A stretch of 64,000 nt of DNA from Podarcis bocagei (GCA_964188305.1 OZ076885.1), one strand, 5' to 3'; shown: positions 4,119 through 59,300, counted from the stretch's first letter. Made by a program: numbers and translations. The notes: generated by a model not told the origin, from the letters alone.

Positions 4119-4226
4119 TCAGCTGGAGACTGGGCGAGGTGGCTTGCTTTTGCTTTCTGCTTCTTTCCCACGAACTGCAGCCACATAAGAGAAGAGACAC
4201 AATACCGAGTAGCAGATCTCATGAGC
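4119..4226 (-). CDS. MADD: MADD terminal coding exon (~ex36): [35 protein letters not shown]
   Basis: tag| acceptor; TGA at 4119-4121. Confidence 0.97.
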
Positions 4227-7200: not shown

Positions 7201-10200
7201 TCTTTCTACCGTTAAACATTGACCTATACCTGTGCTGGTGCCATTAGTTCTTGCTTTAGATAACGTTCCAAAGGAAGATTTGGCAGACACCATCTTAAGA
7301 GCCTAAATACTTCTGTTCAATCATTTGTCAATGTGACAGGCTTAGTTTCAGATTTCACCTGTACATCAGCAACAGCAGATACATATTCCACTCTTATATA
7401 AACTAGCAGAAATTTACTTATGGATATTAAAAATTAAATGCCAGGAAGTCCAACTTCTATTCCCTCTGCAATAAGGAAGCAGAAGTAACAACGAAGGAAA
7501 TACTGCTCTTCTTTTATCGCATTCAAATTGACCACATCAAAAGCTTGTGCATTAGTACAATTTCTGATCTGAATAACGTAATCAAACAACTACAGGCGTC
7601 CCTCCAACTTACGTGCGATTGACCACATATGTGAGCAGCATTGGGAAATAAATAGACTCAAACCAGGAAATGGCAGGATTGCACTAGAAAGTCCTCGTAA
7701 CTCATGAGGAGACACTTCCCAGAGTCTGAAGAGGACTTCAGTGAGGGCAGAGGAAGCCCCAAAGAGACCAGAGGCACAGCAGGGCTTTGCTTTGGCTGCT
7801 CAGCCTCCCCACCCAGCAACTGACATACATGGGAGCAAGTCACCACCTATTTTCTGTGCATCCTCTAGCCTCCAAGTGGCCCCAGAGCTTCAACTCTAGT
7901 TTCAGAGAGAGTTATATGCAGAGAGAGCTGGAGAGCATGTAAAAATGGGCATTCAGAGGCTTTTTAGAGAGTATTCCCCACTTATGTGATTTTTGCTTAT
8001 GCGAACGGGGCCCCCAAAATGTAACCCAAACATAAGTGTGCGGGAGGACGCCTGTATATTCTAAAGTCAAATTATTATGGAATGATTTTGAATCTTTTCT
8101 TTGCAAAACATCTCAGATTTTCTAGGTTAACATAAAACAACTGAAGAAAAGAGCCACTCTCCCCACCCCCCAAAAGGAATCCATGCATTTATCATGGGGA
8201 AAGATAGAGTAAGTATCTTATCATATAAACCCTGATATCACCTACTAAGACAGAATAAATGAATAGTCAATCTATGAACAAATGAATTCAGTATAAATGC
8301 TTATGTGGTGAAACAATATAGCTCAAACAAGCCCTTTCATACACGAGAACAAATGCTATCCAGGAGAAGGTCAATACAAAACGATAAAAAACTAACCAAT
8401 ATTACAATGAGTCATAACTCTAATACAAAACTATGTGCCAGCAGCTAGAACACAGGGCATTGCGGCATCAACATTTCTGGAAAGTTCTTAGGAAAATCCC
8501 ACATATTTAACATATGTACATCCCCAAAAGACACTATTCCATGCCACCAGGAACTAGATGAAGAGCAAGGTCTCACTCTAAACTACTTTAGTATCAAATA
8601 ATTCTGGTACCAACTCTGTATCCCCATAAAAATGATTTAAACAACTAAAACCTGCTATATCATCACAAAAGGAATAAAAAATGATTAACACATTTCTGAG
8701 CTTGGAGTTAGTATGATCATTTGAAAGGCAAGTATATTGGACAGAAGAAACTGAAGTCAAGAAGTCTGGACCAAACAGAAGAGGAGTTGCAAAGTTCCTG
8801 ACCCTTGAGAACTGGTTTTAGGAAGGGGACCATCACGCTCACTAAATCCCCCTGTTCCCCAACTCCAAAAATGAAAATAGGTTTTTAGAAAGGAAACTGG
8901 AAGAGAACCGGGGGGGGGGGGGTTACAAAGACCAAAAAAAGTTTGGTGGGGGGAGGGGGATAAAACATTACTACTGCATAGTATTAACAAACAAACCAAA
9001 AACAAGCTGAAAGGGGGCATCTGATTTCTGAAGCTTTTACAGTTAGAAGGATGAAAGAAATAAGTACACAAGTGCCATCCTGCTTCCTCTTGCCCTGTGA
9101 ATAAGAATACAGGTACAAAGTACTAACAAAGGATTGGGAGGAGGGGCAACACTTTACCTGCTGGAGAATGAAGGTTTTCATAGCAGCAACAGTGAAGGGG
9201 TCACCAAAAAGTTAAGCACAAATACATAGCAGTAACTCAAATCTCAGAGCCAAGGCCTGGTGCTTCCTACTTTCTCTAAGCAATTCTTTCCAGGAACACT
9301 TGCTTCCAGCTATACGCCCTAAGATCTCATCTCCAACTTCCACATTGTCCTTTGTAAAGTGGTCTTGGATAACATGAGAAACATAAAAACAACCAGTTGC
9401 AGATAGGTAGCCGTGCTGGTCTGCCATAGTCAAAATAAAAAAATTCCTTCCAGTAGCATCTTAAAGACCAACTAAGTTAGTTCTTGGTAATACCAAGAAC
9501 TAACTTGGTTGGTCTTTAAGGTGCTACTGGAAGGAATTTTTTTATTTTGATAAAAACAACCAAGCTGACAAAATGAAGATCAAGCAATGTGAAGTATAAT
9601 CAGTAAGACCTACAGAACAACCTTATTACTCATTGGTTAGCTAGTTATTTTGGATGGCGATTAAAAACTACAATTCTTCCTATTAGGAAAAAGCAGGAAA
9701 ATCTGCTTTAGCAATTGTGGATTCCATGCACTACCACTTTCATACTTTCATATGCAGCTGATAATGTCTTCTTTTGAAATTATCAAAACATGAGATAATT
9801 ATATATTATATACAAGGCTTGGGCCTATTGTCTATAGTCATTGAAATTTCGGTTTCAAGGTCTGTCAGACACAAACTGACTGAAACAAAGATGGAGACAA
9901 AGTGGCTCTTTGCTGGACCATAACTCTTAATAGTCTCTCACCCTTGGCCGCACTTATCAGGTTCTTCCTCGCAGGCTAAATTTGACAGGTGGGCAAAGCT
10001 GCCTGTCTGCTGATCACCTGATGTCACAAATGATATCAGGTGATTGGGTGCTTTGAAATCAGCCAAGTCCCACCCCTCCCTGCCCTGCAATTGACATCAG
10101 GTGTAGGCCGGGTGGGCATGATGTGCACAAAGCAGTTTGCAGGCCAAATAGGGAAGCCTGATGGGATGCATCTGGCCCATGGACCAGAGGCTTCCCACCC

Positions 10201-13200
10201 TGTTCTAGCTTAGTAAACTTAGTAAACAATCACATAGCACAGGGGTGCCTGATCCAGATCAGGGCCATATCAAAAGGAAGAAGGGATGAACCTTTCTTGG
10301 GACAGGCCAAGACTGCAACAACTTATTTCTTTCCAGGGGAGTTTCTAGATGGGAAGTTTATTGTGGAACTGGTGCTGATCACTAACACAAGTTTTTTAGA
10401 GTGTCCTCATGGCATTGTCATCAAACCGTCAGCCCATTTTTTTATATTTAATACAGATTTCCCCTTAACCTAGAAAATATACATAAAATTAACCTCCAAA
10501 TACATCTTCAGTCACTTCTGGTCTGAAAGCTCATTAGCTTTTGGTGGGTGGTTTATTATGTGATGGCATTTTAGTAGATAGTCTCTGTCACATCTCTAGT
10601 CATTTCACTTGCAGTGGTCCCCGGTACCACTGGAATATTGATCATTTCATGCTGAAGGCTTGCCTGTTTTGGAGAATCTAGTCTCTCAGTACCTTCACAC
10701 CATGTAGGGAGATTGCCTTTGAGACTAATTGGAGTACATACACCAGGGTTTTAAAAAATGTTTGATATGGAGGTCTTGCAGAAGACCTCTTTATCATTCT
10801 TGCCCAAGTCTTATGGTAAATCTCACTCTTGCACAAGACCTCAGTGCTAAAAATTAAAAATCAAGTGAACAAATGAAAATGAATATGGCCCTCACTACAG
10901 CAAAAAAGCACACTCCTCCATTTTACTCATTGTGAAACCAGATAAATGGCTGGATAAGACTGGTAATGTGTTCTTCTGGGTTTGTTTTTTTTTTAAAGAT
11001 ACACACATCGGTTCAGAAATACCTGTATACATGTATATTCAGACTAGAAAAAGGAGATTGGGGAAGGTGGGAGGAGTGGCACAAAACTCAGCTCAGATAC
11101 ATTCTGTCAAGCTCTGCCCATGGTGAATGGCAAGCGGCAGAACAGAATGAACATTGATGACTGCAAATGGAAATGTGTGGCTAATGTGTCAAATGGACAA
11201 CCAACCAAATCAGATCTGAAGGACCTATTCTGTGGTATAAGGCCACTCTCTGGAAGCACCCAAACAGTACTTTCACAGAAGAAAGGGTCTCCCAAAGCGA
11301 AGTGAACTGGAATATTGACCAGCAATTGCTCTCATCAGTCAGTCTGAGTATCAGTTGAGCATTTATGTGAATCCCATGCAATGACCTTTGGTGCAGTGCA
11401 GATGGCATGGACTGCTTACAAACTGCTATAGAGCTTCGGCGTAACTGACCTGCTGATTTGTACCAGTGTACATACTCTCAAAAGATGTCTTGGAGAACCA
11501 TCTACAGAAGATGGAATTCACTTTTACATTACATGCCCCCACATTTCAATGAATTTGAAAAGAAAAATGATTATTGATATATGGAACTTCATAAATTGGA
11601 ATAAATTTGGAACATCCATAAATATGGAAGTTTAAATTGCCCTGAGTTAAATTCTACACTCACTTCATGTAGCAGAAGTTCTTTACCTAGCTATCCCTTT
11701 CCCAGCTCTTCTTTTCCCATCAGAATAAGTTCCTTGTCAAAACAAAACAAATCACTATGCTGAATTTACCCCATTCAACGAAGTTTTCTTAAGCAGCAAA
11801 AAAGAAGTTAACTTGTTATCCTCATTTCACCTCAGATCAAATACAAATCAAAGAAGTGTAGACATTGTAGTCTGTTGCAGAACATACAACAAGAATCCTC
11901 TAACACATTGAAGTAGCAAATTATTGTGGCCTAAAATTCATGATCCAGAGCCCATTTCATTGAAACCAATGCAATGCATCAATACTATATCTAGTAACAG
12001 CCTAACTACTATAGAAAGATAGCCTAGTTAAAAAAAACAAAAAAAACACAAAGTACACTAATTGCTGGTCGCCATCCCCATCTGCACTGGACAACCTCAG
12101 AAAAGTCAGCTATGTCCTGCTGGTCTCTCTCTCTCTCTCTCTCTCTCTGACACCCACCCACACGTTTCTTCCTGATAGCAACAGGGAGCATTCCTCAGTA
12201 ACAGGAAAAATATACAAGGCAGTCACACCTCACTCATTCCACATACACTCACCACACACATACAAACCACAGGTGCACATGCAACACTCACTCTCTCTCG
12301 CTCTCGCTCACTCATACACAACACACTTCATACCTGCATTTCTCCCTGTCTCTCTGTCCAAGTGCATCTGTCACAGACATGGGTGTCCACAGGAATTTTT
12401 CCATTGGGGTAGGCAAAATAAAGCACTGAAAGGATGAAGCAGCCAATGTCTCCCCCAAAATGGGAAGAATAGTGCCTATAGGTTTTGCCTTATATCTCAG
12501 GTTCTAAAATTGTTAGAAATGTACATCCTGGGGACACTAAAAAGGCTTTCGCATATGCCATGGTGATGTATTATACTCAGACTCTTGGGCAAGTAACTTG
12601 CTCTTTTTGACCAGGCAGATCCCCATAGTAGCTGCTTTGTGGTGGTGCCCATAAGAGTTGCTCAAATTCCTAAATATGCCCACAGACCCAAAAGGTTGGT
12701 GACTCCAGCTCTAAAATCTTGTTATCTAAGCTTAACAATGCCTCAAGTTCACTCATGTCTTCTCCAGTTCTAATAACCTGTTTAGACACAATTTATGCTG
12801 CTTCCTTTGACCTTTCCCTGCCACCCCCCAAAAAAGAAAAATCTATCAAAACGATACAGTTCTGCCTCATGGAGAGGATCAGAAATTTGAGTTACTGCCA
12901 TGTGAGTACAAACCTAATATCAAAATAATGTAATTACCAAATTCTTCCAGGACAAAGACTCCTCGCACTGTATTGCACTTTTTAATGTGATTCAGCTCTA
13001 TGAAAACCTGAAAGAAAAGAGGAGGAAGACACATGATTAGAATAAAGAATGCAATGTCAAAATAAAACAAGAACAAAAAGCACACCACAGCAGTTATAAC
13101 TTGGAATGTTGTAGCATATACTACCAGTTCAACTATAGTTTACTACTTAAATCAAAAGAAAGAGAAATTGGAAAATAAAAATCAAAAAATTGCCACAATG

Positions 13201-15940
13201 CTAGAAATCAAGAAACAACTTAAAAGGCTAAGAAGCTAAGACAGCAGAAGATGGAGTACCTTCCGCTCCTTGCAGGAGGAGAAAGCATGGAAGAGAAACG
13301 AAAGAGTTAGTAACTCTTGACATATCCAACATTGCTACCCCCTTCAGGCACTCAACTGAGTTACAGCAAAAATAAAAACCAACACACTTTGAAATGAAAC
13401 AAAAGGAGGGACACAGACTGCTTCCAGATTTGGTCTGTCATTTGTGGTCTTGCCCCATCCCATTAAATGTCTGCCTCTCCATGCATCCTCCTCCGGCACA
13501 GAGGGCAGGCAAGAGGTGCCATGCTTCCCACCCAAACCAAGGGTTTTTCTTCTATGTTTCCACACGTGATGATGCTCAAGATTTACAGACTGCAGATTAC
13601 ACTAAGTGCTAAAACAAAGGGAGGTTGAGAAAAAAACGAAGCAGCAGGTTTTCACTTCTCTGACTCAGAAACAGAAAGTGTGTGAAAATAAATAAGCTAT
13701 CTTATTGTAGTAGTCCATTCAACACCCAAAGTAGCTTCTCAAACATCCATGCGCATCTTGGAAAGTGCAATCACACTGTTTCATTCAGGACGAGGGGTAA
13801 TATACGGCCTATGTGGAAAAGTACAGGAGGGAAATCATATCTCTATACTAAGATCTCTCCAAACAATGGCAAAATCCCAGGTGTTTTTCTATTAGCAATA
13901 TACTTACACTAGCATACATAAAATGTCAATATGCCATCCCCAAAGAATGGGAGGATAGTCTGTTTACAGGGATATGATGGGAGAGATAAGTAGGAGACTG
14001 CTTTATTAAAGGAAGATAGCCTGGTTTGTTTCTTTAAAAATGCATTTAAAAATCTAGCCATTTCTCATTTAAAAAAGTATAGTACTAAGTCCTAGGAAAA
14101 GATGCAACATCCCTGAAAAAGAAATGCTTCTGGAGGGAAAGATGTTCTCCAACTAACTGAATAACAACATGTTTATTACCGTATTTTTCGCTCTATAAGA
14201 CGCACCAGACCATAAGATGCACCTAGTTTTTGGAGGAGGAAAGCAAGAAAAAAAATATTCTGAATCTCAGAAGCCAGAACAGCAAGAGGGATCGCTGCGC
14301 AGCGAAAGCAGCAATCCCTCTTGCTGTTCTGACTTCTGGGATAGCTGCGCAGCCTGCATTCGCTCCATAAGACGCACACACATTCCCCCTTACTTTTTAG
14401 GAGGGAAAAAGTGAGTCTTATAGAGCAAAAAATACGGTATGTTGTATATTGCATAACTGACAAAGTCCTTAGAATCAATCATTTATAAAAATAAATAAAA
14501 AGCTTACAAGGGATGATTACACCTATCTCTATCCTTTTCTGTTTTACCAGAATCTACAATCTCAGTGTTTACCCAGTGCATGGCTGCAAAAAATAGGTTG
14601 TCAGTCTTCGAGCAATAAGTTTCCAAATCCGGACAATGCCACAACAAAGGGCTTGTTATTTGGGCAAAATACAGCAATACCTATCATGCTAGAGTCTATT
14701 TGGGTTTATAGTTTCGGGGTGCTTTGGGAATCTACTGCTGCATCTGGGACTACAGATTGCAACAGTGGACAAAATTATAGCCCCAGAGCATGGTTTAAGG
14801 ATACTGTACATGATTCTGCTACTTCGTTGGCAAACCATTGGGAACCCTGTGTAAATTATCTTGTTTCCATGATGGAATAAAGGCATGAAAGGTATGTACA
14901 ATTCAGTTGACACAATCCCCCAAACAGCTTAAATACACAGAGAAGTGTGAATTAGAATAAATGGTGAATTAGAATACACCTGAAAATTTATAAAGAATTG
15001 ACTTGCTTTATTCCAAGGTTCAAATGGCAAGTTATGAGGCAACTATAGGATTCCAAACTCTGTTGTTATAACATGGGTGTAGCCAAGGGGAGGGCAGGGG
15101 GGCAGCTGCCCACCTAAATCAATACCAACCAATACAAATTTGAGATTCTGCCCCATAACAAAAGCCTGCCCCTCCTAACAAAAACCCTGGCTACGCTCAT
15201 GCATTATTGTGTTTGAACAGGGTGCTAGGGAGATTTGCAAGGGAGAACCAACATGTAAGATTGAGATGTTAAATCCTTCCACTGCCCCTGTATTATCTCC
15301 TGAAAATTCCTGCCTTACTGTTGTTAACCAATTTTCCCCATATTGATTCCAAGACCAGAAGCCAGACCAACTGGGGGGAACAGCTAGTGGAGGGAGGCAT
15401 TTACAGGGGGAATCTATAGGTGCCAGAAGGTTCACACACGCCACTTCTGCCCACTGATTCTCCTCAAGAAAAGTCCCAATTCATGCAGTCATGTCACCCT
15501 GGCAAACACAGGTTTGGGTAGACACATTTGATGAGATAGCCCAAATGGTTAGAAATTCAAGGAAATCAGGCTTATACACAATGACTTCTGATCACCGCTT
15601 TCTGTGCTTCATTAGCTACACTCCCCCCGCCCATGTATTCAAAGTAGCAAATGCTCAATCATTGTTGAAAAGTGAGTGTGTAATCCCACAGAGCCATTTC
15701 TGCTGAAAAGCATCTTGCTTCTTGAGCAGTGCAAGTGGCTATACTGGAAAGTTAAAACAAAAACAAAAAACCTCCATCTGTATGTATATTTCTCCCCAGC
15801 ATATGTGAACAGCTTCACTGAATCTCAGCCTAGGGCTCCTAGGGACACCAGTAGAATTTAGGAAAAAAATTAGAAAAACAACAACAGAACACTGCACAAA
15901 AGACTGACTGACAAATTTAACTCTCTCCCCATCTCTCTCC

Positions 15941-16011
<71 letters not shown>

Positions 16012-22000: not shown

Positions 22001-23120
22001 TCTGCAATTAATATGGGTTTGCTCTTGCATGGGGGGGGGGTTAAAAATTTGTGGCCACAGGACACCCATATTTCTCCCATACCCTACCACAAATCTCACA
22101 AAAAAATGCGCAAAAATTAAATTAAAATATGAAAAAGTGGCACCTTCAACATAAGCATGTAGGCTATCATATTGTGAAGAAGCGTAGCCAATAAGCGGTC
22201 TTCATCATCTTCTAAACGCTTCCGGTCATGTTCTCCTAGAGACAAATACCTACAAAAGGAACACACATGTACTTGAGTCTCCGATGGACTAACTGCCACT
22301 AACTGCAAAGAAAGATGCAAAATGTTCTGCATCCTCTTCCTTCTTTTATCTTTTTTAACGGAATTAAATCTCTCCACAGACCCAGTACCAGATGATCAGA
22401 AATTAAACTTAGCCTTAAGTTACATTTCCTTTTATAGGCCCAACATTAAAAGACAAGCAAAGCTTCAGGGAGGTCCAAGGTGGTGGGAGGGTTTTTTATT
22501 GGTTTTTGGTTTTTGTTCTTGCTTTTATCATGTATTTTGCATTTTTATATTGCATTTTATGTTGATATCCATCCAGAGATGTACGGATGAAGGGTGGCAT
22601 ACAAATTTAACTAACTAACTAAATATTTCAAAAGACAGACTTTGTGTATAAAGAAAATTAAATTTGGAACAAAGTCTTAAATGTTTTATTTTTTTAAAAA
22701 AAGTTAGAAAAAAATTGTAATCTGCTTAATAAAAAAACTCTAAGCAGTATACAGTACATAAATTAATATAAAGTGATTATTTATTTCAACAAATTTACTC
22801 AGAATAAAATCACATCCTGAATTCCCAGAAAGTTGCTAAACTAAATAATGCAGAGGGAGAGAAAAATTGCAGAGAATTTCTAATTTACCTGTCAATCATC
22901 TCTTGAGGCCCCTGATCCATCCCCATTCCTTCTCTTTCCAACATCACAGCATCTAGGTAAGCATCTTCCCAGAACTGCATATGGTCCCACAGGGTTGATC
23001 GCTCTTTGCCTAGATAGCAGAGAATAAATTAATCCAGAAGACCAATAATTTTGCAAGGAAAAAACAGGAAAAAACCTTTTTCACCACAAGATGTGCCGAG
23101 TAATCAACACCACCACCACC

Positions 23121-23154
<34 letters not shown>

Positions 23155-26100: not shown

Positions 26101-29100
26101 TGCTTGGAGACTTGGACCACACATCTTATTTGGGCCCAGACTACTAAGGAACTGCAAATCTCATGCCTCATGTTTCTAGCTTCCCAGAATCAACAACACT
26201 GGAACATGTGTTGCTTTCACATAATTATCAATGCTTCCCCAAAGTGAGTACATGCCCCCCCCATGAAAACCAGAATCTATGGACAAAGACACAAGGAATT
26301 CTCACTACCTTCTACCCCCATGTCAATCTCCTTGAGGCATTTCTCAAATAATAAACAAAATGTTCAAGACACTCACATGAGAGCTGGAAGTTAAGCTCAA
26401 CCCACTATCTGCACTGATCTGGGATTTCTTCTCATCTGTCTCCCCGAGATCATGAGAGTGTTTTTTACCTTCTGACCCTAAAGAGAGGGAAAGTGATATT
26501 TCATTACTGTGAACAAGAAAATGAAAGAACCAGAAGGCAAATGATCGCTTTGGTGCATGAGAAGTACCAAGAGGGGGAACCAGAGGATCTTCTCCTGTAC
26601 TCTTGAAATAGCATCCACCAGAAATATAGCCTGGCTGGTTGCAGCCACCATTCTGTCCAATACATAAATGCACCTGAGAAGCAGACCAACTGCCTTAAAC
26701 AGTCACCCATTGGAGAAAGGAAAAGGGGAAAAGAGACAAAGCAGGCACCAGACAGATTCCAGTTAATACAAGGCATGCCAAACGGTCGACACATGACTCT
26801 GGAAAGCCACTTCCTTATGTCACAGATACAAGATTGCTTTTGTTGCTGTTTGCTTTTTGGAGAGGGGCAGATCTTATTGTTGGACACTTGGTACTTAATC
26901 TAATATGCTACCATCTACAGCCAAAGTTATTATTTTTCTCATGTTCACCAAGTGACTCATGGTGTGACCATCCAAACAGTCAGCAATAATAATCTGCATA
27001 CCAGAAATGAGAGCTTCAAATGGGACATTTTGGGGCAAAATAGCAATATTATACAGTCACTGTAGGGATGTATTACATGGCTCTCCAGAGTTTGTAACAA
27101 CAAAGGTGAAGCAGTGAGTTTCAGCTGCTACGAAGACATGCATTCATCATCCCACCCTATCCATCTAGAAAACAAATGGTGAAGGGATTTATGCCATGAT
27201 CATGCAGCTTAATGTTTTTTTACCCTCCCGTGATGAGATGAAAGACAGAAAGAAAATGGATGAGAGGAGAGACAGAATTGAGAAGGGTTTGGAAGCTGTG
27301 TGCAATGGAAGTAAGGAGGCAGGAGAAGAATACACTGCAGACTACACAGGTCACCATTAAGAGCTCGAAGGGAGAAGAGACTGAATACAACCCTTCTGCC
27401 ATAGCCATATCTGCCAACCGTTCCTTAACAGGGACACATGACCAGCAGCTGGAGGATTTTATTTTATTTTATTGCAGATCTAGGATGTGTACAAATAATG
27501 GTGTGTGGCAACTCTATGTACACAATACAGCAGTACCTTACATACCACTAAATATGATGAACTAAGAGTTAGGAGTGCAAGTGGGATGTATGATGTCTAT
27601 CACTAGATACTGCCAACATCAGAAAAAGTGAAACAATGTGCAAGAAAGAAAGAAAAATTATATATATGGTGTGCGTGAAAAAAAGACTATTGGTGTGCAT
27701 TTTTGAGATGACCATATTATTCATGAAGGTAGAATTGTCAAAAAGATGGGCAGCTTATCCCAAAGGTTGTATGTACTAGCCATGGAGTATATTTAAAGAG
27801 AGAGTATCATATATAGAACATTCAAAAAAATCAACTGGCATTGGTTTATAAACCTGACTTTAACATACATTTCTAGACTATGTTAGTACTTAGATGCCTC
27901 TAACTATGATGCTAGAAGTAAATAGAAAGTGGAATCATGAAATTCATTGGACTTGTTTTCAGATTCTGTTCACAACTTAGGTACATTAGCAACAGATTCT
28001 TTTTTTAATAAATACCTTTAATCAGTCAAAAGCATGATTTAAAAAGGTGTTATGAAAACACTGGGACGCGGGTGGCGCTGTGGGTAAAACCTCAGCGCCT
28101 AGAGCTTGCCCATCGCATGGTCGGCGGTTCGAATCCCCGCGGCGGGGTGAGCTCCCATCTTTCAGTCCCAGTTCCTGCCCACCTCACAGTTCAAAAGCAC
28201 CCCTAAGTGCAAGTAGATAAATAGGTACCGCTTTATAGCGGGAAGGTAAACGGCGTTTCCGTGTGCTGCGCTGGTGCCAGCTCGCCAGAGCAGCTTCGTC
28301 ACGCTGGCCACGTGACCCGGAAGTGTCTCCGGACAGCGCTGGCCCCTTAAGTGAGATGGGCGCACAACCCTAGAGTCAGACACGACTGGCCCGTACGGGC
28401 AGGGGTACCTTTACCTTTATGAAAACACTAACTGGTTAATTTACGTATTATTCCAATCAATTTAATAAGCACAGAATTTAACTGTGGATTTTTAAACATA
28501 CTAAAGATTATGACTGACTGTTATTTACAGTTAAGGACTGTGAATGAATATTCACGGTTCAGGGCACTGATGGAAACAAAGTTATACATACAGAGAAGGC
28601 AATTCCTTCAAGATGACTTATCTGTAGGGATTGGCCAAAAATATACCTTTGTCAATCATACTCAGAAGTTCCTTTGTATTTCAGTTAATTGATCACACAA
28701 CAGAGAGAGTTAGTTAAGTGAGGAGGGGGGGAAACAAACCTTTAATACTTGGTCAGCCTAAGTCAAAAGTCCATAAAGATGGAAAATAGCTATTTCTTTA
28801 AATAAAAAACCCTACACAAAGTTATATTTGACTTGAATGACTACATTTCAAAGATTAAGTGACTAAAAGGGCATAAGGACCATATTCCAGAGAACAGGGA
28901 ACACTTAAATTTCACAGAAATCAAGGGGAGTTAAAGTTCAATTCTATACCCATTTGTCTGGAAGTAACTCCTGTGAGACTAATGCTTGAGTTGATATGCA
29001 TTGGATTACACCGCACAGCATTCAAATAACACGATTAAATTATTTGACTTCTCAGCAATCACTGGCCCAATTAATACGTTATTTTTGCTGAGCAAGGGTC

Positions 29101-32100: not shown

Positions 32101-32257
32101 TTCAGATAATTCCAGATGCTGGCCCAATGCCAGTGGCAGAACCATAATAGGCATAATGGAAATTCAAGTTGGAAATGCATTACTGTATTTTAATATTTTG
32201 TTGGAAGCCACCCAGAGTGGCTGGGGAAGCCCAGCCGGATGGGCGGGGTATAAATAA

Positions 32258-32313
<56 letters not shown>

Positions 32314-38300: not shown

Positions 38301-41300
38301 ATCAATTGTGTAATCCATTACAGTGATTCAAAGATAAAGTGTAGGTCACCTTCTTTAATTTTTCCTTTTAGAAGTATCACCAGATCTTCTTATACTCAGA
38401 GCAGACGTGCCCAGGGCATGCCACATAAAGCTCATTTTGCATTGTACAGAAACTCTAAGCAAATGCTTTTACCTGGAATTACTGCTTCGTCCCTGTGGTG
38501 AAGGAGTCTCTCTTTTCACTGTCGGGCTGTGCTTTATAACAGAAGACTTTTGATCCACAAGTGCTCGTCTATTTCCTGAATAAGAGAGGAAGCAGAACAA
38601 GAAAACAGTTACTGAAAAGGATGCCCAAGTCCAAGAACGGTACCAATGAGACACACAAAAGTCAGCTAACACTTAATTAAATGGACATACAAAGAAACTT
38701 GGAAAAGCAGCAGCATATTTTGTATTATTGCATCATACATCGGCAGAAAACAGTAATGGGAATGAGACAGAGACAAAAGAGAAGATGGTAACAAGAGCAG
38801 AAGGTGAAAGGCAGGAGTTTGGCTGCTCTGCATGCATTTCTGCCACAAGAACCATCTTCTGATTAGGCAACATATGGAAAAGCAATGTGTTACGGGAGTG
38901 TGACTAGTAGAAATCACATGATACTGGCTTCCAGTGGAAAAATTGCCCAAAAGACAGGCACAAGAATGCTGGCTGGGAGTTGGTATGTCATGCACAGTTC
39001 ATAATGCAAGGAACCCACCTTCATTGCTTACTGGCCCAGCTTCAGTAATAATCTCCATTATAGTATTTAGCCCAAATACTGGGACACAAAATAAACAATT
39101 AGTAGTGCACTGCAAAATCACCACCATTTTTATATTTGATTAGTTAATTGATTAATCCCCTCTCTTTCAGAAACAGCCCTAGATTAATGTTGGGGAACAT
39201 CTACATTGGGGTGGTCCATATAACAGCTTCCCCCATGGCTAAATAGGAATAAACTAAACGTGGAAGGAAAACTTAAGGAAGAGGTATTAACTAGCCAGTG
39301 TAGCAGGGGAGGTTTCCTACATTCCCTGTTCTATCGGCCCACCTGTAATGGTGCTTGTTCTTGATTTGGTCCTGGGATTAGCACTGCCCTTGTATGCCTT
39401 GTGAGCATTAGCTCGGCTCATTCAGTATGGTAGAGAGACTCAAAACAATCATCTCTGTAGAAGCACATTTTGAAACAAATTTCCCAACCCTAATGGCTTC
39501 GAAACACAAAATCACAAGCTCTAATTTCTACTGTAGATGTGTCCTAACCTGATTTAAGGTCACTTGAAGGCTCAAAAGTTACTCTGAACCCCATTCAATT
39601 CAGGAATAATGCTTCTATTTTAGGAATTATTGTCATCTTTTATTTCACAGGAACTGCAAAAAATAAAGCTTATCTCCCTTCAGAACATGAAGGTAAATAA
39701 AACTAAACATTAATGAATAGTTGAAAAGGGTAATGAAACAATGGCAATGAATGAAATGAAAAAATATCTAGCCATCTTGTATCTCAAAGAATTCAAACAT
39801 TAAGAAAATTGATATTTACCTGGCATACACAAATCATTAAAATGTAGAGTTGGAATGGTCCCCCAAGGGTCATCTCGCCTAAATATCTACTATCATGCCA
39901 TCCCCACCACCCAACTAGTATGATACCTGTCAGGTCAGTCAGGTTATAATTTTTCTTTATATATGAAACTGACTAAATTACTGACAATTTTATCCTATAG
40001 AAAATTGGAGATGCCACATGGAACAAGAGTCATCAAGAAATGGCAATAAACTGCAGAAGATGAGACACAAAGCATGGAAAGACACAGAAAAACCCATCAC
40101 TGTTTTCTTCCAATGTGTGTTATCAATAATAGGTTTAGCTAACAGAAGATCTCTGCACAAACAAATGTAGGAATATGACTAAATGGAAATATCCCCAGAG
40201 ACCATGCAGAGTCTTCACCAAACTACTCACAGTCCTTCTGCGTTGGTTTCTGGTTTTTCTACACACACACACACACCCCTAAGAAAATGTTAACTCTTAT
40301 CCAAAGCAAAGTCCAATGCAGCAACACAAAACTAACTTTTGGCCTTTATTACTAAAAGGTCAAAGGTCAGCAAACATCATACCAACCTTCATCCACATCC
40401 CTTCCCACTTCCAGATTAAAGTAATCTTTACCGATGAAAATGGAGAGGGGGAAGAAATAAATAAAATCAACTTATTAAAAACAACTTATTAAAAATAAAG
40501 CATTCTTCCAGCTGAGCAACCAAAAAAATTCAATGCAAAATCAAACAATGGTAAATTAGATTATCTTTCCTTTAACAACAGCAATGACAAAAACCAACTG
40601 TAGTACAGATAACATGGAGTAATTTCTACAGATTCTACTCCATATTTTTCAAGATTTAAGAAGTCTACCTTAGGCTAAGTCCTATTGCTCCAAATGAATG
40701 GCTTTCAATAATTTTCCTCTTAAGGTAAGTTTTAGCCCTTTAGATAAGGGACAATTAAAATGTGATAGCCTTTCCCATGAAAGTGTTTCACGTAACTGGT
40801 GAAAAGTTGAAAAGGTTGGTCTCCCTCTATCTGGGCTGACAGTGTCCATGTGCCAGGAGAGCCAACAGCAGTGATATGCAGCTGTATACATCTGAGGCAA
40901 CACACACACACACACACACTAAGGATATGCTTGCCACATAGACTGTTGCCAGGGAAAGGGCTTTTAAGCTGCCTCCATGTGGGGTTTGTGAAATTAAATC
41001 AGTCCAGAGGATTAAGACTTTGCATTCACTTTATGCAAAATCTCTTTCCACCAAATTGCATCTCATACAGCCGGTGCATTAAAATAAAGACAGACCAAAA
41101 ATAATACTCTCTTCCATACAAAAAAGTGTAATTAATAGTCACTTAAAGAATTCTGCTTAAGAAATCTGAAGCATCACTCAAAATGAATTCCTAATTCTAG
41201 ACTGCCTGGTTTCCCAAAATGATTTTTTTAAGGGTTGGGTGTAATTCTGTGACTGCTTGGCAATCAAAGGGATTCTGAGAGCAGTAAAAGGCAAGGAAAA

Positions 41301-50300: not shown

Positions 50301-53300
50301 TTTTAAAAAATATTTCTATACTGCCCTTCACACTGCCTGTCACAAAGCTGTTTACAATATAAAAATACAAAAATGCATAACATAGTAAAAAACAATACCA
50401 CCAGCACCCCACTGTTTAAAAGGCCATAGATTGTACAATTAGCCAAAAGCCTGGGAGAAGAGGAATGTTTTTGCCTGGTGCCTAAAGATATGCAATGAAG
50501 ATGCCAGACGAGCCTACTTGAAGAGATCATACCAAAAGCAGAGAGCCACCACTGAAAAAGCCCATTCTAGCTGCAAATGACATTCTAGTCACAACGCTGC
50601 TGGTCTATGACTGTAATAAACTGATTGAAATTCTAGTCACAACTGAAGATGCCTGACCAGGCAAGAATATGTATATTTAACCAAAAAAAGCAGCCAATCA
50701 GCTTTTACCTATACTGTACTGAATACTCTCTTCTACAGTCTTCTAGAGTGATATGATTATAGTAAACAGTAAAACTTTTGGCTGGGTGGCACAAGATGTG
50801 AAAAGTAAATATACCTGTTTACCTAAACACAACATATCTTCCCAAGTCATTCACAATTATCTTAGGTTCTTTCTCTCTCAAAGCAATTAAATCAGACCAA
50901 AGCATGCACGTGGAGCTAATTAAATTATTAACTCAAAGTTACTCACTTGGAGTGTCACCGTTGATGTCACACTTCATCATTTCACTAACAAAATCACCAA
51001 GGGATGAATATGAAGAGCTGGAGTCATCATAATCCACACTGTCACTGCCACTATTTTAAGGGGGAAAGGGTGAGAAAGAATTAGAAGTGGCAAAAAAGGA
51101 AAGAAAAATATAAAGCAATAGAGAATGAGAACAGACCAGCAATAGAAAGAGAAGCAACTAAATGGAATATTTTATACTGCAAGGCTATGGTGGCATAGGT
51201 TTTGTTAAATGAACAGCTTCTCTTAAGTAGTAGGTCATCATATATACTGTATAACTCTGTGTTTGGAAATATAATTTTTAAAAAGAAAGGGGACAACTGA
51301 TTTTTACTCTACCAGAAGCATTTTTAAAGGGTGCAGAAGATGGAAGGTTAATAAGAAGGTGTTACGAGTAGCATACTGCAGCAACAGAGACTGGCGCCTA
51401 CATGTTATATTTTCAACACTAGCCAAAACCCTTTTTCTTCTGCCAGTCTTTTAAAAATGCTTTTCAGAACCTTTAGATTTGGATTATATGATACCCTGAA
51501 CTTCTGATTTGACTGTATTTTTTTTATCTTGCATTGTTAATGTTTTGTCAGATTATCTGTTAAACTGCTTTGGAAACGAGTGCTGGAAGCAGTATTGAAA
51601 TTTTTCAGGGGGAAATGGAAAAAAACCAGAAAGACAAAGGCCACTTAGAACCAGCTACATAAAGTTGCTCTACCCACTAACCTATCATCAGTCGGTTCAG
51701 AATCTGTTTCTCTCTCTATTGGGACACTCAGTGCTTCAGCTAGTTGAGAATTGCTGTCATAGACACGGTAATGAATTGGCTGCAACTGATGAGCATACCA
51801 CTTTGGCTTATCACCAATCAGAGCAGGGTCAAACATGTCTGTAGAAATAGTAAGAAAAATGAAGTTATTTCCATGATGTCATCCCCCAAAATCTCAATCA
51901 AGTGGGGCTGAAACTGCCCTACAGAAATTATATTGTAAATGGTAGGCAAAACATCAGTCCATAGAAAGATATTTGCTTAATGGGGTTTGAAATTAAACTG
52001 AATGTAGAACTGTCCCTCCATAGAACAGATACATGCATAATTTTATTTGTATGCCAACTTTCCACAGTTCAAACCAAAAAGGTGGCTTACAGCATGAAAA
52101 AATACATAACTACAACACAACAAAAGCAGTCATGAGCAATAAATAAAACAATAAAAAATACACAACCAAATATAAACCACAACAATTCTACACATCTGAA
52201 TTAAGATACAAAAAACAGCAACAGTCCCCAACCCAAACACACCAGCCCAAGAATCAGTTCAGCAGCCTCAGCCTTTTGTAGCTGGAGTCAGTTAGGGCCC
52301 TACCCTTCTAGGTCAGGTGAAAAAAGGCCTGCAAGGCAAGGGGTAAGTCTTCCAGGTCTCACAGCCAAGATGGTCAGATAGGATGCAGGAGACACTATTT
52401 CCTGACACTACTTTTGTATTAGAAGATTCAGCATTAATCAAGAGGTAACAGTAAACACAAGGCCAAGACTTACTGTTGTGGATTCTTTGGAAAGCATAAT
52501 TAGTTGGGTTGAGTGACCATTCCCCAAAGTATTCCACTGCCTGTGTCTTCGACAATTTATCTGCAAAAGGTGTCTGTTTTGGTCTTGAGGCTAAGAACGA
52601 ATTGGCCTGAAATGCAACCACAGGCCGGGGGAAGAGGCGAAGTGTGCGAGTATGCATCTGGAATCCTTGTAAAACATTTGGTGAATTGAAGAATCTCACC
52701 ATGGCAACCCTAAAAAAATCCAAAAGGTTGGTAATATATTCAACATGACAAGTCTGAAGGACACAGTACATTCACATATCATGAAAATTCTACATTTGCC
52801 TCTAGTAAGGGAAGGACAGCGGAATAAGGTCACCCATTCATAACTAATATCAACTGCGGCCTCAAGACAAAATATGCCCTATGGAAATAAAAGAAACACC
52901 AGTGCCCCTATTGTGCTGTGACCAAAGAAAAATATATTTGGCTTCTATTCTCACTTTCTTTCCAGTAAGCCTAGGGTACAAAGATGATATTGAGTTCCAT
53001 TATCAATTCTGAAGGCAAATAATCTCTTTTACAGTAGTTGGGCCAAACAGCCTAAGCCAATAGAAGGCACTCCACACCACCGAAGTCTCAAGTGGCAGAA
53101 GTAATGGAACCAGGAGAAGTCCCAAACTATGATCCCACTCTTTCAGAGGTAGTGTGACCCCTTCTAGAGCAGGCTGGACATTGAAGCTGGATAGAAGAAC
53201 CATCCACTAACCGTATCTCAGTCTTGTTGGATTATGTTTCAACTTCACACAATTGAAATCTGGCTGGTTGAAATCCCGCAAATTGATTGCTCACAAGGCA

Positions 53301-56300
53301 GAGAGCTTCAAAGTTCCTTTTGCTTTGGGTTTTCCCAACATGAAAAGAACTTTTAAGCTCTCAGACCTGCTAACTGTGCTCTGGAACACTCTTGAGAGAT
53401 CTTGTGGAAACTTGGATAGTCCCACAATATGTCACGGGAGCATCCCAGAGCCCAGTAAGCAAGTCTGAGAGCTTAAAAGCTCTCTGCCTCCCTTGAAAAG
53501 AAAGACAACCACACAGGTGTGATTCCAAGGGTATATGCATTTTTACATGTACATGTCATTTCTGGAACGTAACCCCCCACAGAAGATTCAATCATACAAT
53601 ACTACAATCTAACAGTGACTCGGTACATTCACTGTCTCGCCTGCAGAAGAAGAAAAGGAGAAATGAAGCTGCTTGTCATCAGCATAAAGAGGACAATGAG
53701 CTATAGAACTCTGTATGAACCTACTTAATGGTTACCTCTACATTCTTTTTTCTATTTTAAATTTTCAATTAGAAAACATAGTCAGATTTAACAGAATATA
53801 TATCTCAAAACAAAAGACTAGGAATGGCCAACAGGATGCTCTCCAAATGGTGTAAACCACAACTTTCATAATCCATGACCCACTGATCGTGCTGGGCTTG
53901 GGCCAATGTTAGTCGTTGTCCAAAATATATCTGGAGGGCATCACACTGGCTGACCGCTGTAATGGACTGTGTGGAATCTGTATATACACAAGAGAATCTC
54001 ATCCTCTAGTCTTATGCAGCCTAAGCAGTAGAAAATATTGTTAAAAACTGATGGTAGCTCACATAGAGTGTGTTCTAGTTTATAACAATAAATGTTCATG
54101 AAAAAGTCAATGAAAAAGCATTTGCTTTTTTACTGGAAAGCCACAGCATTTCAGCTAACATTTTCTGCAGGACAGAGCAGAGACCTTCCACTGTATTTGG
54201 AAATTTAACAAAAATACATTGCTCAGACTCACCGAGTGGCCACATCCACAGAGTCTACATCATTGCCATAGATCAGGGGGTTGAACTCTGTAGAAGGTGT
54301 GGACTGCATGTCATTCTGAGATTTCCCCGTAAGCAGTGGGATCTCCTGGCTTTCATGAAACTTCTCTAGGTTAAGAATAGGCTGGGTATTCAAGCTCATG
54401 CTAGCCAAAGCCTGAAGGGCAATAGGTCACAAGAGTAATAAATAAGAACGGCATTGTCAAAACTGCTTAAACTCATGGACAAACACAACCCAAGTGAAAT
54501 GTTCTAGTTCCCCAGAATCAAAATACACCTCTTTCAGCAGATCAGTAAACTTTTAAGCACTCTTTGACTAACCTTTGGCTGCTCCAAGCAGAGAAAAAGA
54601 GAGGACCTTACAACCATTTTACATAACAAATTTAGAATGCTGAATGGTAAATCTAATGACTTATTGGTTGACTAATTTAGTCACTTTATCATGCCCAAAG
54701 CAACCCAAAGCAACTTAAAATCCCCCAGGCTAACTAGTATTAGGAGGAGGGCAGGTGAGTAAAACAAGATTTATAAATATATCCCCCCCCCCAAATATAC
54801 TGGAAACTAACATGAGGAAGGTGAAATCCACCCTTTCAGTAGCTCAACTGTATAAAACCAGAGGATGGGTGTGTTAAAAATTAATAAACTGAGGCACTCC
54901 ACAGAGTACCCCAAACACCAGAGATAAGGCAGATAGTGGCACAAAAAAGGACTTTTTTCCACCTGTAGTATTCCAGTTGTAAAACACCTTTCCTGAAAGA
55001 AGGCACCTGGAGTTCACTTTGTTATCCTGTAGGCACAGGGTTATGCCCCAAGGTATATTTCATATTTGTTAAGTACTGGTTGTTTTACAAATATCCACTG
55101 CTGTTTTTTAATGATTAATGCCTTTGTGCATATTTTATTACTTTTTTGGATTTTTAATTGCATTGTAAACCACCCTGTGATAATTTTATTTATTTAAGGT
55201 ATTTGTATGCCACCCTTCATACCAATCCACTCAGTATTATTCTCTGCACTGAGATCCCAACTCCATCAATTTAAAAACTATCTTTTCAATCCAAATAAAG
55301 GTGCAGGGTCACTGTCCCCTTTCTCATAACTGCTAGTCAGGGAAGCTCAGGTTTCTAGGACAGTGCACTGTTTTAAACCCTACAGTCTTCTGCAGCTCAC
55401 ATGGCAAAGCTAGTATTTTCACAGAACTAACATCTCATGGTCTGACAACATCACCCAGAACATGAAGCATATAAGAGTTAAAGTTTTCACTTCCGCACGT
55501 AGTACACAATCTCATCAATCTAATTTTGCCTCGTCCTCCACTTCTTAACAGTTGTGGCCATCCTACAAACCTTGTGCCTTTCCCCTCGGCCTGAAAAGTG
55601 AGATGAGTGCCACATCCCATAGTTGCCTTTGACTGGACTTAACTATCCAGGGGTCCTTTACCTTACCTTTTTTTTTTAACCTAATCCTCCCCGTTTTTCT
55701 CAATGTCTGCCTCTCTCTCTCAACCTCCTTGTCCTTCCGTAAAGTTCATTTTCCCACCCCCCAAAGCAAATAAATCAAAACAGGTTAAAAAATAATCCAA
55801 TGGAAACTTGAGGCAGAAAAGAGTAAAATAAAGACACCTTTTTGTCAGGCGTGAGCAGCTGTTTCTGAGTGATTGCAGTCATGCTAACCAGACACTGGAG
55901 GCAAGATGGAAGATCACATGACAACACCAGCGGACAATCAGAGGCAAGACGAACACATGATCACAGAGAGACAGATGGAGAAAAAACTATTACTACTAAT
56001 ACCACAGATGAGAAAGGAAATAAAAAGGGATCATAAACAGTCACAGTTCCTGAGCAAGGCCAGACTGCTTTCACCCCACACATCTGCTTGCATACACCTT
56101 TTTAAACGGACTACTAGCCAGCTGTTTTCAGTATAAATATTTATAATGACACTGATCTGAAAGGGCAATAATAAGCCCGTATATATTTGTTAAGTATTTA
56201 TGCATGCATAATACTGTTGCGCCAATATTTCCCACTACCATAACTATGTTTTGTCACAAGGCAGTCACCTTCACAATGTCACCCACATTTCCTTTGCTTT

Positions 56301-59300
56301 ACCCTGTGGATAGTAAGGTTTTGTGTCTTGCATCATAGAATGAAAGGAATGGTTATTATTCTTTTGTTAATTCACTTCACACTGCTCAAATGTGTGGGAG
56401 TTTTGCTGAATAGCCCCTAAACTGTGGAGAGAGAAAAGCAAACAGATTCTGAATGAGCGGCTGGGGATTCTACTGTAAGGGTCAATGGCTGTTCACTGCA
56501 ACAGGTTACACAGGAAATCACAAACGGTTAAATGTGTAGTTCTGCTCTTCTATGGGAGCCAGAAACAGCAGCTTTTGTACTGCTAGTCTTAACACTTTAC
56601 CTTTAAATACTGCATGCAGCATGCAAGGAGGTGTGGGGGAAAGAACAGAAATAAAATCATAAAACCTATTTTGACAGACTCATTCAATCTGACTAAAACC
56701 AATAAATAGCTTCACAGGATTAGAGAAAGAGAACAAATATGGGCCTCATAGGCAGCAATATGAAAATGGAGAAAATGATCATTAAGAAAGGGGAAGGCAA
56801 GACAACTGAAAGCCCAGAGATTCTAAAGGGTGTATCATGCGGGAAAGCAGATTTGTTTGTAGATATTAAGTACTGGTTTAGATGACCATTTTAAATGTAA
56901 TGATGAATTGTTTTATGTAGTGCACAATATGCCATGAAGCTCTGATGTGTATGATTATCTTACAATACCGCAGGTTTTAAATGGGGGTTGATTAAGGATG
57001 AGATAAACCACAGCCTACCACAGCTTCAAATACACGAAAATGAGTTAACAATACACAGTAATAACACCTGCTGATTTCAATGTTTCATGACCACACCAAA
57101 ATGCTCATATGAAAACACACTGGTGGTTTTTTGTCCGGGGGGTGTGTGTCTCCCAATCCCTCAGAGCCAACTGGGGGAAGCCCTGTTGTGCAAGCAGAGG
57201 TCCTTGCACAGGGCTTCTGCTGACAGAAGCAATTAGTTGACTCTCACCCAGGATCCCAAAACATAACAAAGTGACCTGGTTTGGATGTAACACTAAATCA
57301 TAGTTCGGTGTTAGACTCACATGTTCCCCCTTTTCCTTCTGTCAGGGCTTCAAGGAGTTCAGAAGCTTTCCCTTCCATGTTAGATTAACTGCGGCTTACT
57401 GTGCCATTCAAACCTGGAGAATGTGTGGCTCATTTTAACTATGATCAGCTGAAACAAGCCAAATTCATACCTGTTTAGGAAGCTGGCTTGTTTCAATTAA
57501 TTGTAGTTACAATGAACCATAGTTTAGGGATTGGACAACCCACTAAACTCTGGTGGATCTACAACAGAAGCAGAACCTTCAGTTTTCCGCCTGAAAGTCA
57601 CACCAGAGGAGAGGCCACAAGCCTGAGGCTTGATTTCATAATTCTAAACTACATACTTGCCTAGGAGTAAATCCTACTATTAAATATAGCAGGACTTACT
57701 TCTGCATAAACATGTGTAGCATAGGATTGTAAAGAATCTGAACAGGTAGAAAGGCAAATCTAACAGAATTTTGGAACAAATTCAAAAATGTTACTAGATC
57801 AGAACTTTTTTTTTTTAACAAGCTTGACTGTTCACAATGTGGCACAACGGCATCCTGAAAGATGGGACTCAACAGTATTTCAGCTTAATATACAGTTGTT
57901 CCTTGTGCCAAGTGTTAAGGCCAGTGCTTTTTTCAGGGGGTATGCAGGGGTACGGATAACCCTAAACATTTTGTGAATCTAAGTTTGGCCTCATTGAGGG
58001 GCAGAATTTCAATATAAGTAGGAAAATGAGAGCACCCCTAAACATTTTTTTAGAAAAAAGCACTGGTTAAGGCTTTTAGCTATTTACAAATCTGATCCAA
58101 AGCCTTTCTTACTTTTCTATCTCTAGAGGCTCCTAGGCATTTTTATGTGAGCTTCTCTAAAGTAGAAACAGAGGACAGAAAAGTAAGAAAGGCTTTGGAT
58201 CAAATTGTAAATAGCATGCCAAGAGAAGATTATTGTTCAAGAAAAACGGCTGAAAAATGTAAATGGAAGGTCCTGCAGTTTCACAAGCCAAGTCAAATTA
58301 GAAAATAAGTGAACCTTAAATTAATATAGAAAGGCAATTTTTTGTTATTAGGGGAAATTTACAATGTGCTTTGAAAACAAGACTACAACTTCTACTTTGT
58401 GCCACTTAAAAGAGAATGAACTGGGGGGGGGGGTCAAAGTGTCTCCTCAAGGGAAAGGATACTTACTGGACCTTTGTTCAATAGTATAATTGGACAGAAT
58501 CTGCATCTAAACACACACCGGCTTTCCCTAGTCATCCTCTAACCAAGACCGACTGTGTTCCAAAGGAGCCATTGCAAAGATATATTTTTATTCATGGCAC
58601 AGAGCTACAGAAGTCCCATTGGACAGCAGAATTTCCTGCATTGAATGAAGTATCACTAATGTACCCACTATCAGCTACCTGATATAACTCTCTTTAACCA
58701 CATTTCTCATAATTTAGAAATGTTTCTTCATAGAAGTTGAAATAGTCATATTTATTTTAGAGAGTCCACTTTGAGTCTGAACTTTAGTAATAAGTTGTCC
58801 CATTATGATGCTGCAAACTGTGACAGCATCCTTAGTTATCTAATATACTAGTAGTGGAAATTCTCCCAGCCACATTCACTAGAATCCTTACATACCTGCT
58901 TTAAGTGCTTTTTCAATTCTAAAGATTCTGGTTCCGGCAAAACAGGTAATGACTCAGCATTTGTAGGAACAATCACCTGGAATAAAAATTTATAGAGAAA
59001 ATTGCGTTTACAAAAACTCTTGGAGTGGACAATCTTTTATGACTTCTTGGAAACAAGACAGAAATAGGGGCAGGAACCTTGAAGTGGATCTAATTTTTCC
59101 TATTGCTTATGCATTATTGGCTGTGCTCTAAGATGAATTCAGAACTGTCAAGCAGATGATTTGGTTTTCTAATCTGTCAACAAATTAAAATGTGACCTAA
59201 TTATGTCACTTTGCTCCTTGGTAACAGTTGTTTTAGAAAACTTTTCCTTGCCCTTTCAATGCAATATTTTTTTAAGTGTCAAAAACAATCACCATTTAAT

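Follow-up and report, generated by a model that had tools for sequence, protein, structure and literature searches.

MADD, an exchange factor for Rab3 and Rab27 in regulated secretion whose isoforms act oppositely on cell survival, is encoded on the minus strand of a 64,000-nucleotide (nt) stretch of DNA from the lizard Podarcis bocagei, referred to here as the window. Beyond the five classical alternatively spliced regions of this gene (exons 13L, 16, 21, 26 and 34), the lizard locus probably contains a set of old, small alternative exons under selection. Five frame-preserving elements of 57, 39, 9, 9 and 3 nt lie in conserved intronic islands and three of them are present in gene models of other species, which bears out in part the proposal of an earlier note on this sequence that MADD has small alternative exons outside the classical regions. 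We refer to the two 9-nt elements by the peptides they encode, Tyr-Leu-Lys (YLK) and Glu-Arg-Lys (ERK), and to the 3-nt element by its sequence, CAG. The 57-nt and 39-nt exons and ERK are annotated or published, with neural regulation known from the literature for ERK alone. What is new is the pan-gnathostome (Y/F)LK element, which no inspected gene model carries, together with the conservation of the 3-nt element and the finding that two placental mammals have neither the 57-nt nor the 39-nt exon.

The window contains no N. Open reading frames at 63216-63842 (-) and 52313-52771 (-) match uDENN/DENN and dDENN and thereby set the direction of the gene, and a profile-free search with the uDENN exon as query returned full-length MADD proteins. 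Coding exons were placed from 63884 down to the stop codon at 4122 by tblastn with a mole-rat isoform and chicken isoform X3; splice sites were picked junction by junction, with one acceptor set by eye. The frame and phase are consistent through all exons of the resulting 34-exon map, and the exon count reproduces the human MADD numbering. The MADD isoform catalogue rests on the human 36-exon scheme. A scan of the window against Rfam gave no match.

We compared the lizard gene with the MADD loci of penguin, cassowary, mouse, slow loris and catshark, and with MADD protein models: 120 mammalian and 254 bird models for small variants, 383 at the junction of exons 7 and 8, and 308 for ERK. A cluster of metagenome-derived fragments was set aside. 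The protein-model matches listed were from mammals or birds only; squamate, turtle, amphibian and teleost models were not among them. RNA evidence for the lizard, which bears on the stretch between exons 7 and 8, consisted of four contig sets, presumed to be of RNA type, of unknown tissue and mostly from organisms other than the best DNA match. Contigs of this kind lose rare splice forms and cannot prove absence.

In the lizard-penguin blastn comparison, every exon aligned, and only eight non-exonic conserved islands were found in 54.8 kilobases (kb) of intron. Five of the eight contain the 57-nt, 39-nt, YLK, ERK and CAG elements, and the islands make up ~3% of the intron sequence. A conserved-cassette filter, which demanded that AG and GT be aligned, that length be equal modulo 3 and that the frame be open in both lizard and penguin, left the same five elements with decent splice signals; the remainder were their sub-segments and weak sites. 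As the earlier note had described, each of the five is bounded by AG and GT, preserves the frame in the phase of its own intron and follows a pyrimidine tract. Four of them have a UGC no more than 40 nt from the acceptor, and three have a UGCAUG within 300 nt, which stands right at the acceptor in YLK only. Coordinates are collected in Table 1, and splice boundaries are marked by a caret.

Table 1 Elements of the lizard MADD gene, in coordinates of the window
Feature	Position	Strand	Basis
Constitutive exon 7, ends ..KKHLKQ, phase 0	58896..58976	-	tblastn map; joints in transcript contigs
YLK acceptor region, pyrimidine tract then UUGCAUGCUGCAUGCAG, with four UGC and two UGCAUG	56610..56650	-	sequence
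YLK candidate microexon, 9 nt, TATTTAAAG (Tyr-Leu-Lys), phase 0, preceded by exon 7 and followed by exon 8 or the 57-nt exon	56601..56609	-	conserved splice sites and frame
57-nt cassette exon, 19 residues, phase 0, linker after core DENN domain	55838..55894	-	spliced in transcript contigs
Possible 6-nt candidate, CCAAAG (guess)	54573..54578	-	chance scan
Constitutive exon 8	54233..54411	-	tblastn map; joints in transcript contigs
Exon 13L	48015-47735	-	human numbering by exon count
39-nt cassette exon, 13 residues, phase 1, just upstream of exon 16	40387..40425	-	bird conservation and bird models
Exon 16	39078-39019	-	human numbering by exon count
Exon 21	31427-31374	-	human numbering by exon count
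Probable 72-nt candidate, pyrimidine-rich, UGCAUG at +18 and +82	27224..27295	-	sole 72-nt hit of chance scan
Exon 26	23524-23462	-	human numbering by exon count
ERK microexon, 9 nt, GAGCGGAAG (Glu-Arg-Lys), phase 0, 252 nt upstream of exon 34	13260..13268	-	identical in amniotes
Exon 34, 70 nt	13007-12938	-	human numbering by exon count
Conserved non-coding stretch upstream of CAG	9161..9258	-	multi-species alignment
CAG element, 3 nt, between ccag^ and ^gtaaag in intron 34, phase 1	9158..9160	-	conserved sequence

Cassette exons and the ERK microexon

The earlier note had allowed that some of its candidates might be annotated in other vertebrates, and this is the case. Among the small variants of mammal and bird models, 19 residues are inserted at KKHLKQ^ALASM and 13 ahead of exon 16, ERK occurs at KFMHSQ^VFIELNH, and one gibbon model has an additional alanine at VLEEF^VPE. 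Inserts matching the lizard elements at the same junctions are thus found for the 57-nt exon (129 of 383 models, and a catshark model, where it reads CLVSLSVIMQQELVTAEKK), the 39-nt exon (11 of 254 bird models), ERK (70 of 308 models) and CAG (the single gibbon alanine); YLK has no such counterpart. At the exon level, the inserts of Gallus gallus and Lagopus muta isoforms and of the shark Scyliorhinus torazame (GCB80473.1) occupy the same junctions as the lizard exons, and their peptides are identical to the lizard ones at 17 of 19 residues (chicken-type) and at 12-13 of 13. The bird and shark inserts are known as models, whereas the lizard 57-nt exon is also seen spliced in contigs.

In three runs of a single organism, contigs connect 58896 with 55894 and 55838 with 54411; a run of a second organism contains the inclusion joint (58896 to 55894) as well as a direct skipping joint (58896 to 54411). 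Every one of these joints has GT..AG ends on the gene strand. The 57-nt exon is therefore spliced, and alternatively so, in lizards. Together with its flanks it is 86% identical to penguin over 249 nt, and no UGCAUG follows it downstream within ~300 nt. Its 19 residues would be added to the linker after the core DENN domain. The N-terminal 625 residues, modelled by AlphaFold with the 19 residues inserted, had a mean predicted local distance difference test (pLDDT) score of 34, which made the model unusable, and a search of PDB by sequence found no MADD structure; the site shared by YLK and the 57-nt exon was placed by Pfam and PDB-sequence boundaries. The exon resembles the start of exon 8 (54354-54411), the DNA reading GGTTAGCATGAC and GGCTAGCATGAG, respectively, and looks like an old partial tandem duplicate of it. 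In the wasp Venturia canescens this junction is occupied by an alternative exon of 11 residues, AMQLMDQTGSG, which also resembles the start of the next exon (AMSSAG..). A zebrafish "madd 57-nt" event, DreEX0044314, was considered as a counterpart and rejected, since it sits 7 kb upstream of the 63-nt exon 26 and so corresponds to exon 21. Elsewhere in the surrounding intron, RNA-type contigs reach summed depths of thousands at 55544-55735 and 57848-58231, with many loose ends; the two stretches are not copies of each other and are probably interspersed repeats transcribed from many loci.

The 39-nt exon would add 13 residues just ahead of exon 16. The peptide is identical in penguin and cassowary, with flanks that are 88% identical over 200 nt, and one UGCAUG is located downstream at +179. 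An 83-nt island at 40033-40115 (-), ~270 nt downstream of the exon and 80% identical to penguin (CATTGGAAGAAAACAGTGATGGG ... CTCATCTTCTGCA), may control the splicing of the 39-nt exon or of exon 16. Neither cassette could be traced in the two placental mammals examined: intron 7 of mouse and loris bears no trace of the 57-nt exon, and the 39-nt exon is absent from the introns of both. By exon count, both lie outside the human 36-exon numbering. The two would be ordinary cassettes, present in lizard and birds, and the 57-nt exon also in shark.

The ERK sequence is identical in all five amniotes sampled (lizard, penguin, cassowary, mouse and loris). A 9-nt neural microexon of zebrafish madd, DreEX0044304, is regulated by srrm3/4, and its inclusion is lost on removal of SRRM3/4 (PMC12626424). 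The reverse-transcription PCR primers for DreEX0044304 lie in exons 33 and 34, which identifies it with the ERK exon, and the human orthologue likewise shares junction and length with ERK. A 9-nt MADD microexon has been described as one of only two bilaterian-ancestral neural exons (bioRxiv 10.64898/2026.09.05.749416). Isoforms of the wasp Venturia carry an alternative DFE at the ERK site. The site is located inside Pfam PH_MADD, the C-terminal PH-like domain, and is predicted to fall in a loop between two strands, according to an AlphaFold model of moderate confidence (local pLDDT 73-75). Inclusion of this SRRM3/4-dependent neural microexon would lengthen that loop. UGC motifs lie at -19 and -6, with no downstream UGCAUG.

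Several further features of this region were noted. The ERK acceptor is a tandem, caAG^GAG^CGGAAG, with both AGs conserved in penguin, and use of the second may give a 6-nt form encoding Arg-Lys. The longest conserved block of the gene (12882-13533, -) starts upstream of ERK and extends over the 252-nt intron and exon 34; it is 82% identical to penguin over 672 nt. Exon 34 itself is skipped in 32 of 254 bird models, giving the frameshifted tail FLKLKKW, and two quail models carry GNYIILIL, which arises when the intron that follows exon 34 is read through (lizard sequence ggtaattacattattttga).

The (Y/F)LK and CAG elements

The YLK site reads cag^TATTTAAAG^gtaaag in the lizard, TATCTGAAG in penguin, TATCTAAAG in cassowary, TATCTCAAG in catshark, TACTTGAAG in slow loris and TTCCTGAAG in mouse, where it encodes Phe-Leu-Lys (FLK). 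An AG, 9 nt and GTAAA are conserved in all six species, which represent five lineages, and the pattern CAG^T..YT.AAG^GTAAA is invariant. Inside the 9 nt, the leucine codon varies among TTA, CTG, CTA, CTC and TTG and the tyrosine codon between TAT and TAC, and the single replacement is Tyr to Phe in mouse. Synonymous or conservative changes between invariant splice dinucleotides are the signature of selection on the YLK peptide, and the species compared suggest that such selection on (Y/F)LK is operating across roughly all jawed vertebrates.

The acceptor of YLK contains UGC at -16, -12, -9 and -5 and UGCAUG at -16 and -9, overlapping the acceptor. Birds, loris and mouse retain UGCAUGCUG of this acceptor; catshark retains the UGC motifs only. 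Since the catshark keeps the exon without UGCAUG, the conserved core is the exon and not the RBFOX motif. The succession of a pyrimidine tract, UGC repeats, AG, 9 nt and a strong GTAAA donor is the typical layout of an SRRM3/4-responsive microexon. It is the layout of the SRRM3/4 (eMIC)-dependent microexons in other GTPase regulators, DOCK7 and ITSN1 among them, which share the tiny frame-preserving build, the UGC between pyrimidine tract and AG, the strong donor and the conserved flanks; YLK differs from them in its two UGCAUG motifs at the acceptor, and the likeness of YLK and CAG to this class is one of sequence. YLK also resembles ERK/DreEX0044304 in length, frame, UGC-containing acceptor and deep conservation, but is placed ~1,100 residues upstream, in the linker of the DENN module instead of the PH-like domain, and was found in no gene model or paper examined.

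RBFOX-activated exons carry a UGCAUG downstream, within ~300 nt, whereas YLK has none downstream and two upstream. Upstream UGCAUG motifs lead to repression rather than activation by RBFOX, and the tandem copy before YLK accordingly predicts, as far as a positional rule can be applied to sequence, that the element would be repressed. YLK would be included in a minority of transcripts or in particular cell types. Sharing its junction with the 57-nt exon, it is nevertheless kept in mammals that lack that exon.

The CAG element is smaller still. The sequence CCAGCAGGTAAAGTG is identical in lizard, penguin, cassowary and loris, and mouse reads CCGGCAGGTAACGTG. If spliced in, CAG would change EEF-VPE to EEF-A-VPE, which matches the extra alanine of one gibbon isoform. 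In none of the species compared does the exon-35 acceptor (ccggttttag^TTCCTGA) contain a tandem AG, and the gibbon alanine is therefore best explained by the CAG element. Its UGC motifs are only at -28 and -25, and there is no downstream UGCAUG. Lizard, birds, loris and mouse share ~85 conserved nt upstream of CAG, and the similarity stops right after GTAA.GTG. The possibility that this island is a longer exon, coding or poison, with its start at TTTGAG^TT was considered; a coding exon was rejected, given a stop in the lizard frame, a length of 78 nt in sauropsids versus 71 nt in mouse, and deletions of 2 nt and 5 nt in mammals.

The element also has the make-up of a recursive splice site, that is, a pyrimidine tract and an AG abutting a GTAAG-like donor (polypyrimidine-CAG^GTAAGT): it reads CAG^GTAAAG in lizard, birds and loris and CAG^GTAACG in mouse, or, in the RNA, CCUUCAUUCUCCAGCAG^GUAAAG and, in mouse, only CAG^GUAACG. 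Recursive splicing is typical of very long introns, and intron 34 is short for this class, at 5,993 nt in lizard and 1,804 nt in mouse. CAG further departs from recursive sites in the additional AG that four of five species keep 3 nt upstream, and in the matching alanine of one primate model. On its sequence, CAG may thus be either a microexon of the smallest class, inserting one alanine into the PH-like domain, or a recursive splice site. YLK and CAG may be used in RNA, perhaps in particular tissues, and the small exons may affect Rab3/Rab27 exchange activity.

All three short elements have the general properties of microexons. YLK and ERK (9 nt, phase 0) and CAG (3 nt, phase 1) fall within 3-27 nt and preserve the frame, a UGC follows the pyrimidine tract near the 3' splice site, and exon and flanks are conserved, from shark to mammals for YLK and in amniotes for CAG and ERK. 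We considered that (Y/F)LK might be an uncatalogued microexon as old as jawed vertebrates, placing three residues in the hinge that follows the catalytic core DENN domain, and CAG a 3-nt microexon adding an alanine to the PH-like domain. Counting ERK and, outside mammals, the 57-nt and 39-nt exons, the regions of MADD that can be switched independently would then number ten or more, and current annotation would have overlooked two of them. We advance this reading tentatively and regard it as rather doubtful as a whole.

A competing account, for which the balance of evidence is about even, holds that nothing is hidden: all five elements, including YLK and CAG, would already be listed in splicing databases (for example, VastDB for human, mouse and chicken) and be missing only from collections of protein models. 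YLK/FLK and CAG are conserved in mouse, in a primate or in both, and such species have microexon-aware catalogues; ERK is catalogued, and the extra alanine does appear in one RefSeq model. On the other side, the literature on neural madd/MADD events gives only the 9-nt exon at the ERK site and longer exons (57 nt, 63 nt and one more), and no mention of a second MADD microexon was found in that literature, splicing databases not being part of the search. Matches to C. elegans madd-4 were set aside, as that gene is unrelated to MADD.

Other observations weigh against YLK and CAG as exons. A YLK/FLK insert is present in none of the 383 protein models that span the junction, though the equally short ERK is annotated. 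No YLK joint was found in the four RNA-type contig sets, in which low-depth unspliced contigs alone cover 56462-56744. Mouse lacks the upstream AG of the 3-nt element, and the core that is left, CAG^GTAACG, has the classic shape of a recursive site. These points favor a second alternative, in which the two islands are conserved intronic control elements that do not enter the mRNA, YLK being an RBFOX/SRRM binding cluster or a decoy pair of splice sites that adjusts the use of exon 8 or of the 57-nt exon, and CAG a recursive (zero-length) splice site. The conservation of the tandem UGCAUG in amniotes and the ~85 nt of non-coding conservation upstream of CAG point in the same direction. However, a pure protein-binding RNA element is not expected to keep a reading frame, and in six species the 9 nt show only synonymous or Tyr/Phe changes between invariant splice dinucleotides. 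The YLK element persists in mammals without the 57-nt exon and in shark without UGCAUG; the extra alanine of the gibbon model is just the residue that CAG would supply; and an intron of 1.8-6 kb is an unusual host for recursive splicing. We consider it improbable that both islands are control elements of this kind.

Chance background and other intronic segments

The earlier note had proposed seven hidden frame-preserving candidates (3, 6, 9, 9, 39, 57 and 72 nt) and located only the two ends of the series, so that the 72-nt and 6-nt sites used here are best-scoring guesses. Five of the seven hold up as conserved elements and coincide with the intronic conservation peaks that the note had called for in cross-species alignment; the two guesses lack conserved splice sites in the lizard-bird alignments. 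Neither acceptor nor donor of the 72-nt candidate is conserved in penguin, and the candidate is missing from the conserved-cassette list. The region of the 6-nt candidate cannot be aligned with penguin or cassowary. As far as they can be identified, these two candidates are probably chance matches.

Sequence signals of this type are common. A scan for a pyrimidine tract (≥70%), AG, a multiple of three nt open in the phase of the intron, GT and a donor match of at least 6 of 9 positions found 44 sites on the sense strand of the introns, which total 54.8 kb. The antisense strand gave 41 and shuffled sequence 34.3, so that the generic criteria are not above chance as a class. Introns such as these hold dozens of frame-preserving pseudo-exons with pyrimidine tracts, but it is highly improbable that the candidates are such accidental AG...GT matches, an explanation that stands for the 6-nt and 72-nt candidates as guessed and is refuted for the other five, which fall within the ~3% of conserved intron sequence, three of them being present in models of other species and one spliced in lizard contigs. 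Motif criteria alone do not separate real exons, whereas conservation does, and the choice of exons in the earlier note was far better than chance.

Other segments were also inspected. A 57-nt stretch at 27448-27392 with both splice sites conserved was considered as a hidden exon and rejected, with six replacement versus two silent changes and no occurrence in any bird model. It belongs to an island at 27340-27467 (-) in the intron between exons 21 and 22, whose core (GGTTGGCAGATATGGCTATGGCAGAAGG..) is ~85% identical to penguin and which was not found in mouse; the pattern of replacement and silent changes argues against its being coding. At 15962-16168 (-), a T-rich element is followed by a (TG)n(AG)n microsatellite, which also occurs at the orthologous intron position in penguin. 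A 17-residue MADD insert of birds and a 32-residue insert of cuckoo have no lizard counterpart.

Implications for MADD isoforms

The human 36-exon scheme misses two cassettes of lizards and birds, one of them, the 57-nt exon, also found in shark, that are lacking in at least two placental mammals. Beside the catalytic module lies a 9-nt candidate exon which appears to be under selection at the protein level, yet is in no gene model inspected, and near the other end of the gene a 3-nt element behaves like the smallest possible exon. Splice motifs and an open frame alone return as many hits on the wrong strand as on the right one; it is the conservation of both splice sites together with synonymous change that marks real exons.

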